From assembly GCF_000143415.4 (NCBI RefSeq), contig NW_003314281.1, positions 1,158,481 to 1,222,480 on the forward strand: DNA of 64,000 bases, given 5' to 3'. Under the pieces are notes generated by a model. That model did no database searches. It was given only the letters and a program-made list of their open reading frames with translations, and was not told the origin of the DNA. Position 1 is the first letter of the stretch. Every line of letters starts with the position of its first letter. This DNA comes from Selaginella moellendorffii (lineage: Eukaryota; Plantae; Lycopodiophyta). Below are positions 18,758-27,045 of this stretch, in pieces. The translations under genes and the position numbers were made by a program.

Positions 18758-19922
18758 GACATGTGGCGAGTGCATATATTAATCCAACACATAGACAATC
18801 CAATTAACTTAAGCCAGTGAAGGGCGAAGATATCATTTCATTGGTTTCTAGTGGAGCGCTCGTTGCCTTGGTGCTCTTAGGGATTTTGTGGTGGAAGGTG
18901 GTGAGACGATCCAATGCCACCAAGAAGAAGCTCCATCAGGGGGATCTCACTGATAGGTACCAAGAGCTGTACCGAGCAAGGGATTCCAGAGCAAGGTGGG
19001 AGAGGGAGGGTTTGGGACTGTGTTCAAGGGGATGCTGCCCAGCAGAGAGATTGTGGCGGTCAAGAGGATTGGCGGTGGATCGCGGCAGGGGGACAAGCAA
19101 CTTAAGGCGGAGGTGATGTGGATTGGCAGCATCCATCACCTCAATCTCGTAAAGCTGGTTGGATTTTGCCTGCAGTCTCCCCCCAACGTACTTGTCTACG
19201 CCAATGGCTTGCTGGATGGATGGATTTTTGCCAAGGACAAGTATCTGCCCTGGGCAACCAGGCTATCCATCGTGCTCAACGTCACTCGAAGGCTTGCATA
19301 TCTCCACGATGGATGCCACAAGAAGGTACTCCATCTAGACATCAAGCCCCAGAACATCCTCCTGGACGAGAAGATGAATGCCAAAATTGCCGACTTTGGA
19401 TTCTCCAAGCTCATTGACAAGGACAAAACTCATGTCGTGACAGTCATGTGGGGCACAGTGGGATACATGGCTCCCAAGTGGCTCCACTCTCGTGTCACGG
19501 ACAAGACGGACGTCTATAGCTTTGGGATCGTCCTCCTGGAGCTCATGTCCTGCATGAAGGCCGTGGAGTATCCCTCGGACTCACAGATGCACGTTGGGTT
19601 CCTCGCCCAGACTGCTTTCAACAAGCTCGACAGTGGAAACGCCATGCACTTGGTGGATGATCGGCTGGTCAAAGCCGAGGACGGTGGTGGTTTATTGAGT
19701 GGCTTCGAGAACATCATCCGGATCGGGCTATGGTGTGCACAGGAGGATCCTTTGCAGCGACCAACGATGTCTGTGGTGGTGAAGATGCTCGAGGGTGCCA
19801 TGGATGTGTTGGCGTTCCCTCAGCTGGAGAGACCCGCTGCACAGGATTCATCACTCCTGGTGAGCAGCAGCGAGAGCTCGGGATTGCAAATCTCCATCTC
19901 GGTCTCTGACTTGGCTCGCTAA
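18758..19922 (+). pseudogene. 5'-truncated receptor-like kinase (TM + non-RD kinase), paralog of kiwellin-RLK-B
   Basis: TM LVALVLLGILWWK is in a different frame from the kinase ([21 protein letters not shown]). APE is APK and there are small deletions. Sequence matches the reverse complement of 23465-24243. Confidence 0.82.
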
Positions 19923-20459
19923 GTAGATATCTGAAGAATTATGATTGCTTAATAAGTTAATTGAACGGCAATTTACATATATATTTAGAATCCTCAATGA
20001 GAAACCAGGAGGTCTCGAGGCGGAAGATCTGGAGGAGTTCAGCAAATGGCTCAAGAATCATCAAGAGAAACGGCAAGACCTTATAAACAAGTAATGAATG
20101 AATGAGGTATATAAACACACACGGCACGGCGATGGCAACCCTAAAAGTGGAAATGACGGCAATGACAGCAATGCTGGAAGAATTGTACATGCAGCAGCAC
20201 TGCATTCAATTCATGGCTAGAAATCACCAATCTGCCACTTCTCTTTCTTTTTCATGAAAGACCAATGTTGATTTCAGAGTCAGAACAATAAATTTAAAAC
20301 GTAGAATTCTTGCTGTGAAATTAGGTGAAGTGGTAGTAAAAATGAATTAAAAATATTGTGGGTCCACAACAAAGTTCACTGACTAATAAATAAAAATAGA
20401 TGAGCTATTTATTAGTCTTAAAATCTTTTCATATGCAAGCATTTCCAATCTAGCTGCCA

Positions 20460-21240
20460 TAGTCTTGGATCTGGCATCCCATAACTCAGCATCCTGTAGC
20501 TCATGATCAATAAGAAGGTAGTTAGATCCCACGTAGAAGTCCATGTTGCATTCATTGTTCTTCTCCTTGTCTTTCGTGCAGGCATCATCCACCCGAACAC
20601 ATCCATTCTGCCGTTGGAAAGCGCTAAGTCTTGGAGCAGATCTATCTTGAGATGTGATCCAAAGGGATACTTCCCTTCATCTGGAACAGCTATAGACACG
20701 TAAAGCTGCAAGTCGTTCCCTCGACTGCCCTTGGGACCATCAGTCACAGAGTAGTAGGTGCAATCGTTGTCTTCACAATTCACGTAGCGCCCATCCTTCA
20801 ACCTTCTAGGACCCTTCGTGGATTTCTGAACTGAAACCGCCACAGACGGAAGCTATCGCGTTGTCATTGCAATCCTTGATTTCTGTGTTTGAGGCCTCGT
20901 TGCCGCACTCCTCTACAGTCCAGTAGTACGTCTCTGGCTGCCTCCACTGAGAATCCCAGAGCCATGCAAGCGAAAAAGAGCACAAGAGAAGCGGAAGATC
21001 GATGATTTTTAGCCATGAATGAATGCAGCGCTGCTGGCTGTATAATTCTTGCATGACCTCGGAGCACTAGCTTTTATAGGAGCCATGCATCGCCGTGCGG
21101 TGTGGTGTGTGTATACCGCATCTGTTGTGGGACCACCAGCCAGGTGCAATCGTCGTCTTCACCCTCGACGTGGCCTCGTTGGTGCTCCTCGGGAGTCCAG
21201 TAGTACGTGAAACTTTCGCTGGCTGTCTCCACTGAGAATC
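20460..21240 (-). pseudogene. Secreted 3D-domain-like protein, frameshifted copy plus upstream partial duplicate
   Basis: ATG at 21016 (MAKNHRSSASLVLFFACMALGF); ~8-bp deletion after AAR and further frameshifts; paralog of 22399-23262. Confidence 0.75.
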
Positions 21241-21566
21241 CACGAAGAAAGATCTGCTGCAATGATACATGGCTGGAATTGCAAACCTCTCGCGGGTAAA
21301 CTGCTCTAGCAAAAGTCTGAAGTCTTTTGCGGTCTCATGTGGAGCTAGACTTGTCAGGCTTTTGACTTTCTAAAGCATTGCGAGGGTCCCGTGGGAGGAA
21401 TTGCTCTTTTAGTCTGCCAGCCCAAAAAAACCTTGACACTGAAAGATACCTCCGAACTTTAAGTCTTTGGGCCGAAACGAACTAATGAGACTTACATGAT
21501 GTCATAGTCTAGTCTCTGACTTTCTATGGTTTCCAGGTGCCCAAGAACAATGGTATTTACTAAACT

Positions 21567-22016
21567 ATGGAGGTGTCGATTCTCTGTGCTTCATGGTCGT
21601 GCTATGTAGCATCCACTCGCAAGCCCAACAACAGGTATGCTCTTCGTTAAGCGACTGCCTGAATGGATCTCTTTGTTTCCTGGAGCGTTCACTCCAGACT
21701 GCTTTCAACAAGCTCGACAGTGGAAACGCCATGGGTCAAAGCCGAGGACGGTGGTGGTTTATCCTTGAGTGGCTTCGAGAACATCATCCGGATCGGGCTA
21801 TGGTGTGGACAGGAGGATCCTTTGCAGCGACCAACGATGTCTGTGGTGGTGAAGATGCTCGAGAGTGCCATGGATGTGTTGGCGTTCCCTCAGCTGGAGA
21901 GACCTGCTGCACAGGATTCATCACTCTTGGTGAGTAGCAGTGGCTCGGGATTGCAGATCTCCATCTCGGTCTCGGACTTGGCTCATTTGAAGAATTATGA
22001 TTGCTTAATAAGTTAA
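21567..22016 (+). pseudogene. Chimeric RLK fragment: 5' end of kiwellin-RLK-A fused to kinase 3' end of RLK-B type
   Basis: 21567-21695 matches 25126-25283. From 21695 it matches 19607-19920 (TAFNKLDSG...IGLWC...SDLA). Confidence 0.8.
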
Positions 22017-22398: not shown

Positions 22399-23262
22399 CT
22401 AGTCTTGGATCTGGCAGTTCGGATCAATATTGGCATCCCATAATTCAGCATCCTGTAGCTCATGATCAATATTAAGGTAGTTACTCTCAGATCCCACGTA
22501 GAAGTCCATGTTGCATTCATTGTTCTTCTCCTTGTCTTTCATGCAGGCATCGTCCACCCGAACACATCCATTGTGTTGCCTGCCGTTGGGAAGCGCTATG
22601 TCTTGGAGCAGATCTATCTTGAGATGTGATCCAAAGGGATACTTCCCTTCATCTGGAACAGCGATAGACACGTAAAGCTGCGAGTCGTTCTCTCGACTGC
22701 CCTTGGGACCATCAGTCACGAAGTAGGTGCAATCGTTGTCTTTGCAATTCACGTAGCGCCCATCCTTCAACCTTCCAGCACCCTCGACGTGGATTTCTGA
22801 ACTGAAACCGCCACAGACGGAAGCTATTGCACTGCCACTGCAATCCTTGATTTCTGTGTTTGAGGCCTCGTTGCACTCTCCTCTACAGTCCAGTAGTACG
22901 TGAAACTCTCTCTGGCTGCCTCCACTGAGAATCCCAGAGCCATGCAAGCGAAAAAGAGCACAAGAGAAGCCGAAGATCGATGGTTTTTCTGTACAATTCT
23001 TGCATGACCTCGGAGCACTAGCTTTTGTAGGAGCCATGCATCGCCGTGCCATGTGGTGTGTGTATACCGCGTCTGATGTGGGACCATCGGCCACGGAGTA
23101 GCAGGTGCAATCGTCGTCTTGCTTTCCAGCACCCTCGACGTGGCCTCGTTGGCGCTCCTCTGGAGTCCAGGAGTACGTGAAACTCTCTCTGGCTGTCTCC
23201 ACTGAGAATCCTAGAGCCAAGCAAGCGAAAAAGAGCACGAGAGAAGCGTGATTTCTAGCCAT
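22399..23262 (-). CDS. Secreted protein with C-terminal 3D (MltA/DPBB-like) domain; open but rearranged reading frame
   Basis: 287-aa ORF: signal peptide MARNHASLVLFFACLALGFSVETA, then motifs EGAGRLKDGR, YVSIAV, YPFGSHLKI, HNGCVRVDD, MDFYVG. The middle is an out-of-frame second N-terminus, so functionality is uncertain. Confidence 0.6.
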   Translation of the reverse strand: MARNHASLVLFFACLALGFSVETARESFTYSWTPEERQRGHVEGAGKQDDDCTCYSVADGPTSDAVYTHHMARRCMAPTKASAPRSCKNCTEKPSIFGFSCALFRLHGSGILSGGSQREFHVLLDCRGECNEASNTEIKDCSGSAIASVCGGFSSEIHVEGAGRLKDGRYVNCKDNDCTYFVTDGPKGSRENDSQLYVSIAVPDEGKYPFGSHLKIDLLQDIALPNGRQHNGCVRVDDACMKDKEKNNECNMDFYVGSESNYLNIDHELQDAELWDANIDPNCQIQD

Positions 23263-23448
23263 GAATTGAATGCACTGCTGCTGGCTGTACAATTCTTCCA
23301 GCTTTTCCAGCTTCCAGCCATGCGTTGCTGTGCCTGTTGTCATAACATGAAGATTCAGCAACTGAACTCGTACCAACATCAGCATTGGTCTTTCTTGCTA
23401 ATAAAAAGAAGTTTTTGACGAAGCAAATGTTTAAGTCATATTCATTCA

Positions 23449-24866
23449 TTAGTTGTTTATAAGCCAGAAGCCGAGCTTGTTGAAAGCAGTCTGGGCGAGG
23501 AACCCAACGTCCATCTGTGAGTCCGAGGGATACTCCACGGCCTTCATGCAGCACACGAGCTCCAGGAGGACGATCCCAAAGCTATAGACGTCCGTCTTGT
23601 CCATGACAAGAGAGTGGAGCAACTCGGGAGCCATGTATCCCACTGTGCCCCGTGAGTTTTGTCCTTGTCAATGAGCTTGGAGAATCCAAAGTCGGCAATT
23701 TTGGCATTCATCTTCTCGTCCAGGAGGATGTTCTGGGGCTTGATGTCTAGATGGAGTACCTTCTCGCGGCATCCATCGTGGAGATACGCAAGCCCTCGAG
23801 CGACGTCGGGAAAGCCTGGTTGGCCAGGGCAGGCACTTCTCCTTGGCAAAAATCCATCCATCCAGCAAGCCATTGGCGTAGACGACTACGTTGGGGGGAG
23901 ACTGCAGGCAAAATCGAACCAGCTTGACGAGATTGAGGTGATGGATGCTGCCAATCACCTCCGCCTTAAGTTGCTTGTCCCCCTGCCGCGATCCACCGCC
24001 AATCCTCTTGACCGCCACAATCTGTCCGCTGGGCAACGTCCCCTTGAACACAGTCCCAATCCCTCCCTCTCCCACCTTGCTCTGGAATCCCTTGCTCAGT
24101 GAGATCCCCCCGATGGAGCTTCTTCTTGGTGGCATTGGATCGTCTCACCACCTTCCACCACAAAATCCCTAAGAGCACCAACTAGAAACCAATGCAATCA
24201 CTGGCTTAAGTTAATCATGCGTTGGATCAATATGCCACATGTCTTAATGGTTGCGCCGCCCTTAACCTCTTCAAATGACTTGCAACACATTATCAAAATA
24301 CGTCTGGCCCAGCCCTTCCCACACACCTCTCGTCCCTCCCAACGATCTGGGCGTGCACGGCTCGTAGTATCCGCCACCGTCGCCGTGACGCTCATCCCAT
24401 TCTCTGCCGTGATCACAATCTCTTTGAAGCACGAGGATCCACTGGCAAACCATCCGGTGGCCATGTTTGCCAGGAGCTCCGAGTTCTTGTAAGGCGTGGA
24501 TTGATTGCATGCCGTGGGGAGTTCCTCCAGCTTGATGTAGTAGAAAGCCGCGAAGTTGAGAGACTGCTCTTCAGGGGAGCAATTGAAGAACTGATAGATG
24601 TTGTTGCCGATGCAGTACTCGGGATTGTGGGCAGTGGCATTCGAGTTGACGAAGGTCTTGCCGGGCTCGCAGCCGGGAATTGGGCAGGAAAGGGTGCTAG
24701 CTCCTGGATCGCCATCGTAGGTCTTGCTAACAGGATTGCAAACGAGGCCGCTAGAACAATCGCGCCTAGAGTCGCATCTCGTGCCGCAAGAGGAGGAGAA
24801 TTGCTGCGCGGTGGCGCTGGCGAGTGAGGTCATCGCTGGCGCGAAGAAAGTGCTGCAATGATCCAT
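23449..24866 (-). pseudogene. Kiwellin-RLK-B (kissper/kiwellin ectodomain + TM + non-RD kinase), frameshifted and 3'-truncated
   Basis: CDSRRDCSSGLVC, FNCSP, ATGWF...C.K.I.ITAENG.SV.A.VAD; then in another frame PCTPRSLGGTRGVWEGLG; TM VLLGILWWK; kinase motifs split over three frames. Confidence 0.82.
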
Positions 24867-25125
24867 GGCTGGAATTGCAAAAGGTAAACTGGTTTAAACG
24901 CTGAAGTCTTTGCGGTCTCAAGATCGAAGCTTTTGACTTGTTAAAGCATTGCGGGTCCCTTGGAGGAATTCCTCTTTTCGTCTGCCATCCCAGAAAAACC
25001 ATGACACTGAAAGATACCTGAAGCCAGCTGCCAAACATTAAGTCTGTGACGAGAGAGACGTGATCTCATAGTTTCTGATTTTCTATGGTTTCCAGGTGCC
25101 CAAGAACAGTGGTATTTACTAAACT
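24867..25125. promoter_or_regulatory. Putative bidirectional promoter between the two kiwellin-RLKs
   Basis: 259 bp between divergent ATGs (24866 and 25126); a second copy lies at ~21270-21566. Confidence 0.55.
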
Positions 25126-27045
25126 ATGGAGGTGTCGATTCTCATGTGCTTCATGATTGTGCTATGTAGCACCAGGAGCTTCCACTCGCAAGCCCAACAA
25201 CAGGTATGTTCTTCGTTAAGCGACTGCCCGAATGGATCTCTTTGTTTCCCGGAGCCCATGCTCAGCGGCAACCGTTCACTCCGCAATTCATCCTGCTACC
25301 TATCGAACAATCAATCCGAGCCATATCTCAGCGATTCTGAAGCTTGCAAGCCCATCTCCAGCGTCATTTTCAATGCCACCATCGGTCCAGACTGCCCGAA
25401 TTGCTGCGTCCCAGGCCTGGCTTACAGGTATTTCACCTGCTCTCCAAATTTACAAGGGACCAACAATGCCGTCCTCTATGTCACAAGCTTCAACCTCTCA
25501 AATCCGGGGTCTCTCAGGCCGTGCACGTCCTCGGAATGGAATAGGGAACCCATGGCAGCGCTGGCCACTGGATGGTATAGCCAAGACCGAAGCTTGTGCT
25601 CGAAAAACATCCAAGTTTTAGCTCCAAACGGACGGACTGCGGTGGCTAGAATGGTGGCTGAATGCTACTCCCCAGACGGGTGTCTCAGGGATCATTCGTT
25701 CACGGAGCCCTGTGCTCCAAACGCTGTGGCTGCGAACGAGCAAGTGTGGAGGCAGCTTGGGTATGATCCAGGCATTGGAATCTTGAGAAATATCACCTGG
25801 AATGTCATTGATATGAATCTTCCACAGTCCATTCGAAGCAAAAAGAATTATCTGGGAGTGATCTCTGGGGTAGCAAGCGCTGTGGCCGGGGTGGTGCTTA
25901 GCGTCGTAATCTTCGTAGCAACCAGGAAGTGGAGAAGATCTCGGAGGAGGCGCATGGAAAAGCAAGCGCTCATCGAAGGAATGAGGCTCGATGAGATACT
26001 TCCGCACCAGTTTAGCTATCACGACTTGAAGATGGCAACTAGAAACTTTGATCCCGAGCTCATGCTTGGAGCTGGAGGATTTGGATCCGTCTTCAAAGGA
26101 GAGCTTGCGGATGGGAGCCTCGTTGCTGTGAAGAAGATGGACGTAGAGATCCAAGGCTCGTCGAAAGGACACTCGCAGTTCAAGGCCGAGGTAATGTCCA
26201 TTGGCAGCATTCACCACTTCAACCTGGTAAAGCTCCGGGGATTTTGCATCCAGGGACCAGCTGCATTGCTTGTCTACGAGTTCATGCCCAATGGATCACT
26301 GGACAAGTGGATCTTCACCAAGAACGATGATGACAAAGGTGGCGGATCAGCAAATCTGCTGTTAAACTGGAACCAGAGACACTCAATCGCGATAGATGTT
26401 GCTCGAGGACTCACATACCTCCATGAAGGATGCCGGGAGCAAGTTCTTCACCTGGATATCAAACCTCAAAACATCCTCCTGGACGAGAACTTACGAGCCA
26501 GAATCTCCGACTTTGGCCTGAGCAAGCTCGCCGAGCGGGGAAAGAGCCAAGTGGTGACTGTCATGCGAGGAACTCCCGGATACATGGCACCCGAGTGGCT
26601 CCACACTAAAGTCACGGACAAGACCGACGTTTACAGCTTTGGAATCGTGCTGCTCGAGCTCGTCAGCTCCAAGCGGACCATCCAGTTCCATCCTCCATCC
26701 TCCTCTTCCTCCTCATCCTCCTCGCAACCGCGCTTCCTGGGCGAAACCGCGCTGAGCATGTTTCACAGTGGCAACGTCGTCGAGCTTATTGACGACAAGC
26801 TCCTGGACGATGATCTCGCCAGCACTAGCACTGGCTTGGAGCTCAAGGATGCCGAGAGGTACGTGAAAATCGGACTGTGGTGCATCCAACTCGAGGCAGC
26901 AATCCGCCCCTCCATGAGAAACGTCCTGGATATGCTTGAAGGTAACATAGACGTTCTTGACTTGCCACCACCTTCAAGTGATGGTAGCTCCAGAAGCTTC
27001 AGCTTGCGACTACCTGGATCCTACTTCAGCTCCACTCGTCTGTGA
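25126..27045 (+). CDS. Kiwellin-ectodomain receptor-like kinase (non-RD), 639 aa, intronless
   Basis: Signal peptide; CSSLSDCPNGSLC (kissper-like); FTCSP, ALATGWY, C.KNI.V.A.NG..A.A..V.EC.S..GC..DH....PC, VW..LG, ITW (kiwellin/ripening-related); TM then RKWRRSRRRR; [31 protein letters not shown] all intact. Confidence 0.92.
   Translation: MEVSILMCFMIVLCSTRSFHSQAQQQVCSSLSDCPNGSLCFPEPMLSGNRSLRNSSCYLSNNQSEPYLSDSEACKPISSVIFNATIGPDCPNCCVPGLAYRYFTCSPNLQGTNNAVLYVTSFNLSNPGSLRPCTSSEWNREPMAALATGWYSQDRSLCSKNIQVLAPNGRTAVARMVAECYSPDGCLRDHSFTEPCAPNAVAANEQVWRQLGYDPGIGILRNITWNVIDMNLPQSIRSKKNYLGVISGVASAVAGVVLSVVIFVATRKWRRSRRRRMEKQALIEGMRLDEILPHQFSYHDLKMATRNFDPELMLGAGGFGSVFKGELADGSLVAVKKMDVEIQGSSKGHSQFKAEVMSIGSIHHFNLVKLRGFCIQGPAALLVYEFMPNGSLDKWIFTKNDDDKGGGSANLLLNWNQRHSIAIDVARGLTYLHEGCREQVLHLDIKPQNILLDENLRARISDFGLSKLAERGKSQVVTVMRGTPGYMAPEWLHTKVTDKTDVYSFGIVLLELVSSKRTIQFHPPSSSSSSSSSQPRFLGETALSMFHSGNVVELIDDKLLDDDLASTSTGLELKDAERYVKIGLWCIQLEAAIRPSMRNVLDMLEGNIDVLDLPPPSSDGSSRSFSLRLPGSYFSSTRL

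Follow-up and report, generated by a model that had tools for sequence, protein, structure and literature searches.

Two decayed tandem copies of an MltA-type secreted protein gene in Selaginella moellendorffii, from a family that was probably acquired horizontally

The minus strand of a 64,000-nucleotide stretch of the Selaginella moellendorffii genome (contig NW_003314281.1, positions 1,158,481 to 1,222,480; hereafter the window) carries, in tandem, two copies of a gene without introns for a secreted protein of about 200 amino acids (aa) related to the lytic transglycosylase MltA. They occupy window positions 20450-21277 (copy A) and 22399-23262 (copy B). Both copies are decayed duplicates of a gene family, three intact members of which were located elsewhere in the genome. 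The reading that we favour, and hold as a whole to be probable, is that the window pair consists of tandem decayed duplicates of an MltA-type secreted family of S. moellendorffii, the intact members of which are enzymes, and which likely entered the plant by horizontal transfer. The copies and their lesions, the fold, the conservation of residues, the integration into the genome and the taxonomic pattern are reported below as observed.

The two copies and their lesions

Searching the window by tblastn with the intact protein SELMODRAFT_431484 (P0001, 205 aa) placed residues 45-202 at 22872-22402 (92% identity) and residues 3-40, in another frame, at 22988-22875 (100% identity), together forming copy B, and revealed the more broken copy A at 21016-20473. 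The copy A unit has the same nested layout as copy B, approximately 1.97 kb upstream (lower window coordinates) at 21277-20450, and each copy is preceded by a truncated extra copy, at 23262-23091 for B and at 21277-21185 for A. A relic of such a truncated copy (VEG...DC...) was also seen just upstream of the promoter of the intact P0001 gene (L001:9850-9900, L001 being the P0001 locus), indicating that the nested partial duplication is older than the spread of the cluster.

For the description of the lesions, the intact intronless locus of SELMODRAFT_431484 (L001:10001-10618) was used as the reference in DNA alignments. Both window copies are 96% identical to P0001 at aligned bases, and every indel is a deletion. 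Relative to the P0001 coding sequence (CDS), copy B carries four deletions, of 27, 10, 3 and 9 bp. The 27-bp deletion, after 22989, has removed the ATG, and the 10-bp deletion, after window position 22875 and past codon 40, causes a frameshift; the 3-bp and 9-bp deletions are in frame, the latter taking the last three codons. The TATA box of copy B has been altered from TATAAAAG, the form shared by the P0001 locus, the P0002 (SELMODRAFT_416208) locus and copy A, to TACAAAAG. Copy A, at 96.1% identity to the P0001 CDS, has six deletions of 8, 9, 2, 7, 6 and 19 bp, four of them frameshifting. The ratio of non-synonymous to synonymous substitution rates (dN/dS) specific to the copy B branch was uninformative, there being too few changes (4 synonymous and 6 non-synonymous).

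Assembled contigs of public sequencing runs of the species were also compared with the two copies; such contigs can show the presence, not the absence, of a transcript. Contigs of four probable RNA runs carry the 10-bp and 3-bp segments that are missing from the window, and matched P0001 at 13/13 diagnostic sites. No exact match to copy B was present among the contigs listed for these four runs, which were the longest ones, and a 301-bp stretch specific to copy B gave zero sampled words in the 17 listed probable RNA contig runs of the species. The same stretch was present only in runs of one sample, the kind of which was not given. The window copies are likely to be transcriptionally silent.

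As judged by these disabling lesions against an intact paralog, the window copies are pseudogenes, not a working gene, and the window locus itself is a case of ordinary gene decay.

The interval 22399-23262 is a 328-aa open reading frame (ORF) counted from its internal Met, as determined from the ORF list and a three-frame translation. Its path begins at the ATG at 23262 within the truncated copy, runs through the promoter and signal-peptide region out of frame, and enters the correct frame past the 10-bp deletion. This chimeric ORF, of 287 or 328 aa, might be regarded as a live gene in its own right, in which the 27-bp and 10-bp deletions have put the catalytic domain behind the signal peptide and first strand that the truncated copy supplies, with a disordered linker of about 80 residues in between. 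The frame runs for 328 codons without interruption; in copy A the chimeric frame ends at a stop codon, which the 27-bp deletion has eliminated in copy B, and the 10-bp deletion brings the upstream part into phase with the catalytic domain. Shuffling of the 88 bridging codons gave a stop-free stretch in only 1.7% of cases. The VRVDD and NMDFY catalytic motifs are intact, and an AlphaFold model of the 287-aa form placed the outer FTYSW strand (residues 25-31, predicted local distance difference test (pLDDT) above 80) with the confident domain, while residues 45-126, the roughly 80 residues joining strand and domain, were disordered. However, neither TATA box survives, the conserved Cys43 is missing together with three residues at the C-terminus, and the linker is junk translated out of frame. 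The chimeric ORF was unmatched among the listed contigs of the four runs in which the paralog was seen, and its copy-B-specific stretch was missing from the sampled words of the 17 runs, as given above. Moreover, the open frame was noticed post hoc, and the placement of the strand by AlphaFold was driven by the alignment. A live chimeric gene is thus, in our judgement, distinctly unlikely. A Pfam match to Ig_ADGRF3 on the linker was below threshold and on junk sequence, and was discarded.

The 328-aa ORF is identical to the C-terminal 328 residues of the gene model SELMODRAFT_413345 (P0179, 516 aa), in which splicing unites three parts in a single protein, namely the kiwellin-like ORF at 24198-24866, a short exon from a kinase fragment, and the chimeric MltA-like ORF. 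The fusion is probably an annotation artefact, and in the genome annotation SELMODRAFT_413345 therefore stands for a kiwellin-like ORF joined to pseudogene debris.

An earlier note on this DNA had described two copies, and these were recovered, both on the minus strand. The consensus protein that it had pieced together from them (a signal peptide, FTYYWT, IKDC, EGAGRLKDGRYVN, YVSIAV, YPFGSHLKI, HNGCVRVDD and MDFYVG) proved to be almost exactly P0001/P0002. It had presented 22399-23262 as the gene of a secreted protein; the interval does hold a real copy of the family, but it is the read-through of a truncated copy into an inner copy and not one clean gene, and the note's emphasis was misplaced in that the window copies are decayed duplicates, not a working gene. 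The intact paralogs that it had proposed to look for elsewhere in the genome were found, namely SELMODRAFT_431484, 416208 and 405120.

Fold and active site of the intact proteins

The family comprises intronless genes for cysteine-rich secreted proteins of about 200 aa with a predicted compact MltA-type fold, that is, a double-psi beta-barrel (DPBB) bearing the '3D' catalytic aspartates. By inspection, P0001 begins with a signal peptide of typical eukaryotic character; ten cysteines are present in the mature protein.

When the Selaginella profile was used in an exhaustive HMMER search, 355 proteins were returned at E <=1e-3, 63 of them at <=1e-10. The Pfam 3D domain (PF06725) matched 14 of 50 aligned family members (47 relatives and the three Selaginella paralogs), the best at 1.7e-15; since the Selaginella proteins were not among the 14, their membership of 3D is transitive and not direct. 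A single-sequence search of the PDB with the protein gave nothing meaningful, its 'amidase' matches being to an expression tag. A profile search of PDB sequences found YuiC at E 0.03 only, with GCVRVDD...IDFF aligned to YuiC ADTGSAIKGNRLDLY.

The AlphaFold model of P0001, computed with the alignment supplied, had a pLDDT of 90.9. When this model was searched with Foldseek, the first 14 PDB matches were all MltA-type lytic transglycosylases (E 6.5e-5, probability 1.0), followed by YuiC. In VIA-align, E. coli MltA (160 residues aligned) and the A. baumannii enzyme both had a Z score of 10.0, and YuiC had one of 7.5. The best rows other than MltA were a diffocin baseplate chain (5.3) and Pa4485 (5.0), and expansins, GH45, barwin, kiwellin and cerato-platanin scored about 4 or lower. 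The nearest shapes in the ESM Atlas were a 3D family of Myxococcota (template modelling (TM) score 0.76) and a Mucoromycota cluster (TM 0.75), and a feature search agreed.

In YuiC, D162 (MltA D308) is the catalytic carboxylate and D151 (MltA D297) binds sugar at subsite -2, while T91 orients the catalytic Asp and Y93 may participate in catalysis (PMC4499186). The profile alignment equates P0001 D153 with YuiC D151 (MltA D297) and D168 with YuiC D162 (MltA D308). Judged by motif position, outside the profile alignment, P0001 T32 and Y34 would correspond to YuiC T91 and Y93. Over 188 family rows, D153 is conserved in 186, D168 in 179, Y34 in 175 and T32 in 157; E74 (of EGxG), H145 and G147 are nearly invariant in the family. 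Copy B of the window retains the equivalents of both aspartates, with EGAG, SIAVPD, HNGCVRVDD and NMDFY present in the C-terminal part of its inner gene, and its Thr/Tyr first strand is out of frame.

Compared with the MltA references (E. coli, A. baumannii and N. gonorrhoeae; PDB 2pi8, 7esj and 2g6g), the Selaginella protein has the same fold over ~155-160 residues (Z 9-10), and the first-strand Thr/Tyr and the Asp pair (D297, D308) are conserved in the Selaginella family. It differs in its size, which is roughly half, with a far smaller inserted domain B, in having a eukaryotic signal peptide in place of the lipoprotein anchor, in its ten cysteines, and in that the plant proteins match neither Pfam 3D nor MltA, the sequence identity being 15-17%. 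YuiC and the other stationary-phase survival (Sps) proteins of Firmicutes, which have been termed 'stripped-down MltA' (PDB 4wlk; PMC4499186), share with it a minimal secreted MltA-type catalytic domain, and the weak profile match to YuiC covers the D..D motif. Only 93 residues align, however, and part of the MltA insert persists in the Selaginella and fungal proteins, with EG(T/S)G and His145 as invariant elements, the latter without a mapped counterpart in YuiC. The closest likeness is to the '3D domain-containing protein' of early-diverging fungi (Conidiobolus, Entomophthora, Basidiobolus, Dimargaris, Mucorales) and of Myxococcota, which belong to the same HMMER family (E down to 1e-28), share TYYW, EGxG, HNGCVRVDD and IDFF, and have a similar predicted shape (TM 0.75-0.76). 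From these the Selaginella proteins differ in an identity of only ~35%, in having P-D for N/D-D after SIAV, and in a Cys-flanked insert between the two aspartates.

From the model and the conserved residues we infer that the intact family members would be secreted enzymes cleaving glycans that contain N-acetylglucosamine (GlcNAc). SELMODRAFT_431484, 416208 and 405120 appear to keep the residues by which MltA and YuiC cut the glycan chain of peptidoglycan, or of GlcNAc polymers resembling chitin, to leave a 1,6-anhydro sugar, and on that ground they may be apoplastic enzymes of the lytic-transglycosylase type, acting on microbial cell walls. Alternatively, the intact proteins could be DPBB proteins without enzymatic activity, which would bind or loosen polysaccharides or serve as elicitors in the manner of expansins, cerato-platanins or kiwellins. 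Catalysis has been lost in many DPBB families, the position of the first aspartate is shifted in the Selaginella proteins, and dN/dS between the two youngest paralogs is 1.11, all of which would suit such a role. Against it, the catalytic Asp, its partner Asp and the first-strand Thr/Tyr are conserved family-wide, and a Z score of 10 to MltA stands against 3.5-4.2 to expansins, barwin, kiwellin and cerato-platanin. We consider a non-enzymatic role unlikely and retain the enzymatic reading.

Relatives and phylogeny

The named relatives closest to the Selaginella profile in the HMMER search were proteins of Entomophthora muscae (1e-28), Conidiobolus coronatus, Neoconidiobolus thromboides and Dimargaris species, the matches from Entomophthoromycotina ranging from 1e-28 to 1e-22 with an identity of ~35%. 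The wider family includes members from Basidiobolus, Parasitella, Chlamydoabsidia, Spinellus, Gilbertella, Syncephalastrum, Bifiguratus and Jimgerdemannia (Mucorales and Endogonales being among the groups), as well as from the chytrids Nowakowskiella and Hyaloraphidium, a record of the springtail Allacma fusca and one EukProt protist entry. A separate set of 57 metagenome rows was annotated as 3D-domain, one of them with close relatives in Myxococcota metagenome-assembled genomes (MAGs). No plant other than S. moellendorffii was present among the named matches, which made up about one-third of the matches in searches of 1.8 and 5.8 billion sequences.

In a quick tree of 187 rows, the Selaginella clade (support 99) fell within the Entomophthoromycotina group (Shimodaira-Hasegawa-like approximate likelihood ratio test (SH-aLRT) 91). 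This nesting was not relied upon, given that a more careful tree did not resolve it and that a constrained search reached a better likelihood than the quick free tree. In the careful tree, built from 39 rows of named sequences, eight bacterial or metagenome rows were split from fungi, Selaginella and two other eukaryotes with a support of 98/96. The Selaginella proteins are thus of fungal or eukaryote type, but the trees do not single out a donor lineage.

The Allacma fusca record (P0166) and a protein from a metagenome contig (P0010, L004) are closely related eukaryote-type members and form sister rows with a support of 99; the springtail member may stem from a further transfer, with an animal as the recipient, or from a contaminated assembly. 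A further protein, P0008 (from a Logan contig, 1212 aa), has the MltA-like domain at residues 516-681 amid Cys-rich EGF-like repeats, with further domains before and after.

Intact paralogs and their genomic setting

A word-based protein search yielded proteins of S. moellendorffii only: 431484 (205 aa), 416208 (197 aa), 405120 (196 aa), the partial model 423500, and 413345. The intact paralogs SELMODRAFT_431484, 416208 and 405120 are intronless and lie on scaffolds of 0.26, 1.9 and 4.3 Mb among plant genes, and SELMODRAFT_431484 is represented in contigs of probable RNA runs. Like the window copies, 431484, 416208 and 423500 adjoin kiwellin-ectodomain receptor kinases and pieces of topoisomerase I; the neighbours of 405120 are F-box, fibrillin and HEATR1 genes.

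Between 405120 and the other paralogs dN/dS was ~0.3 at dS ~0.8, from which it follows that the family is old and that selection has maintained it in the plant. For the youngest intact pair, P0001 (431484) and P0002 (416208), the value of 1.11 mentioned above was obtained at dS 0.086, which suggests fast protein change following a recent duplication.

Contamination of the assembly with fungal or bacterial DNA, or an assembly artefact, would account for nearest relatives that are not plants. The window copies, however, sit between plant receptor kinases and among ArfGAP, MYB-CC and FtsH-type genes, the paralogs are spread over five scaffolds, one of them amid F-box, fibrillin and HEATR1 genes, and the best identity to any fungal protein is only ~35%. 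We regard contamination as excluded, its probability being negligible, because of the plant-gene context in the window and at four other loci.

Other features of the window

The features of the two copies and of the adjoining genes are given in Table 1. The window also contains ArfGAP, MYB-CC and FtsH-type genes, and its kinase cluster was confirmed by Pfam and by an analysis of repeats.

Table 1. Coordinates of the MltA-like copies and neighbouring features in the window
Feature	Position	Strand	Remarks
Copy A, inner gene	20450..21016	-	ATG at 21016 and TATA box at 21070-21082 kept
Copy A, upstream truncated copy	21185..21277	-	FTYYWTPEE, HVEGEDDDC
Copy B, inner gene, C-terminal 157 codons and stop	22399..22872	-	P0001 residues 45-202; from tblastn and DNA alignment to L001
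Copy B, inner gene, signal peptide and FTYYWTVEES	22875..22988	-	P0001 residues 3-40, 100% identical
Copy B, promoter relic	23021..23033	-	TATA box CTCCTATAAAAGC (P0001 locus, P0002 locus, copy A) altered to CTCCTACAAAAGC
Copy B, upstream truncated copy	23091..23262	-	ATG, signal peptide, FTYSWTPEE, internal deletions, HVEGAGK, DDDCTCYSVADGP; own TATA region deleted
Chimeric read-through ORF, truncated copy into inner copy of B	22399..23385	-	328 aa; 287 aa from Met at 23262
Broken kinase-domain fragment	23449..24135	-	Inverted duplicate, 94-99% complementary, of kinase ORF 18996-19922
Kiwellin-like ORF	24198..24866	-	Pfam KWL1, 1.4e-07
Intact receptor kinase with kiwellin ectodomain	25126..27045	+	Such genes flank the MltA-like gene at three other loci

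A segment of the kinase domain of a receptor kinase is present as an inverted duplication (18868-19629 versus 23472-24181, 94-99% complementary), and both MltA-like copies lie between its arms. The plus-strand arm holds an intact 308-aa ORF (18996-19922), and the minus-strand arm is split into several ORFs. The 5' end of the kiwellin receptor-kinase gene is likewise duplicated between the two MltA-like copies (21389-21686 versus 24957-25255, 89-96% identity), where it is joined to a C-terminal kinase fragment at 21663-22016, and the region is a mosaic of partial duplicates.

At four of the five loci (L001, L002, L006 and the window), the MltA-like gene has kiwellin-ectodomain receptor kinases and whole or fragmentary topoisomerase I genes as neighbours, the exception being L005, the locus of SELMODRAFT_405120. 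This repeated neighbourhood could reflect co-duplication of the cluster or a functional link.

Discussion

Horizontal acquisition is, on the distribution of the sequences, the most economical explanation of the family, because a single plant species carries it, against many early-diverging fungi and soil bacteria. Most likely, a family of the early-diverging-fungal type, with the Myxococcota-type bacteria further out, entered the Selaginella lineage by horizontal transfer, and would then have multiplied mostly within clusters of kiwellin-ectodomain receptor kinases. The case resembles the fungus-to-plant or microbe-to-plant transfers described in early land plants, in which a gene of microbial type is confined to an early-diverging plant lineage, integrated and duplicated, and differs from them in that donor and timing are unresolved for the Selaginella family. 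A literature search found, in the library that it covered, no paper on the Selaginella genes or on the fungal branch of the family, the supplementary tables of large surveys of horizontal gene transfer lying outside that search. Enzyme activity, substrate, a role in defence, and the direction and source of the transfer are the deduced parts of our favoured reading.

Several results count against this reading. Pfam 3D had no match, even at E 10, in the window ORFs or in P0001-P0003. At the column of the first aspartate (MltA D261, YuiC D129) the family has N in 88 rows and D in 82, and the Selaginella proteins have P118-D119, shifted by one residue. Copy B holds a long ORF of a kind that chance would leave open in only ~2% of cases per frame. 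For other lycophytes, ferns and bryophytes, the search covered protein collections only, the plant coverage of which is uncertain. In the careful tree, the backbone inside the eukaryote-type clade was unresolved, and the nesting of Selaginella within the fungi was not established. In the approximately unbiased (AU) test, a tree with the fungi as one clade without Selaginella had p = 0.136, and one with Selaginella outside all other eukaryote-type rows had p = 0.871, the constrained likelihood in the latter case being better than that of the quick free tree.

Two other origins were weighed. The family could be an ancient eukaryotic gene that was inherited vertically and lost in nearly all lineages. 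The AU tests, which left Selaginella outside all fungal or eukaryote-type rows unrejected, are compatible with such a history, and eukaryote-type members occur also in the springtail record and the EukProt protist entry. S. moellendorffii is nevertheless the sole plant among the named matches despite the number of sequences searched, the eukaryotes that carry the family are scattered, with soil organisms over-represented among them, and the genes are intronless; vertical inheritance is in our estimate highly unlikely. Alternatively, Selaginella may have received the gene straight from a bacterium, independently of the fungi. The FTYYW and IDFF motifs are common to the members from Myxococcota MAGs and a Wallbacteria MAG, the quick tree set the Wallbacteria protein near Selaginella on a long branch, and the feature search of the Atlas listed a Verrucomicrobiota cluster at 0.92. 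In the careful tree, however, all eight bacterial or metagenome rows, including Wallbacteria, stood on one side of the split and Selaginella on the fungal side, and the best HMMER matches of the Selaginella profile were those of Entomophthoromycotina. A direct bacterial source seems to us quite unlikely, and acquisition of a fungal-type gene is the origin that we continue to prefer.

The earlier note had assigned the protein to the MltA/3D group, which the Z score of 10 to MltA, the PF06725 matches in 14 of the 50 family members and the conserved active-site Asp, Thr and Tyr support. It had placed such proteins in early-diverging fungi and soil bacteria, and not in angiosperms. Among the nearest named relatives, early-diverging fungi do come first and Myxococcota-type bacteria next, with S. 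moellendorffii as the only plant. Its proposal of horizontal acquisition stays short of demonstration: the Selaginella clade lies in the eukaryote-type clade, but its position there is unresolved, and the AU tests do not reject one outside all fungi. An antimicrobial or elicitor-releasing role, which it had also put forward, may apply to the intact proteins.

A bolder idea concerns the kiwellin-ectodomain receptor kinases that flank the MltA-like genes at four of the five loci. Enzymes and receptors might form a working pair, an immune 'enzyme plus sensor' module built in part from an acquired gene, in which peptidoglycan or chitin of microbial walls would be cut by the enzyme in the apoplast, and the receptors encoded next to it would either detect the resulting fragments or keep guard over the enzyme itself. 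We consider this a long shot, with very little probability of being correct.

If the transfer is true, a wall-degrading enzyme of fungal type would be added to the few microbial genes that an early lineage of vascular plants has acquired. The case is a testable one, with three intact paralogs, a predicted catalytic aspartate and clear candidate substrates. The analysis also flags a widespread but unstudied eukaryotic branch of MltA-type proteins, with members from early-diverging fungi as well as from one springtail record and one protist entry. For Selaginella itself, the interesting biology is that of the three intact paralogs outside the window, together with their repeated place beside kiwellin-ectodomain receptor kinases.

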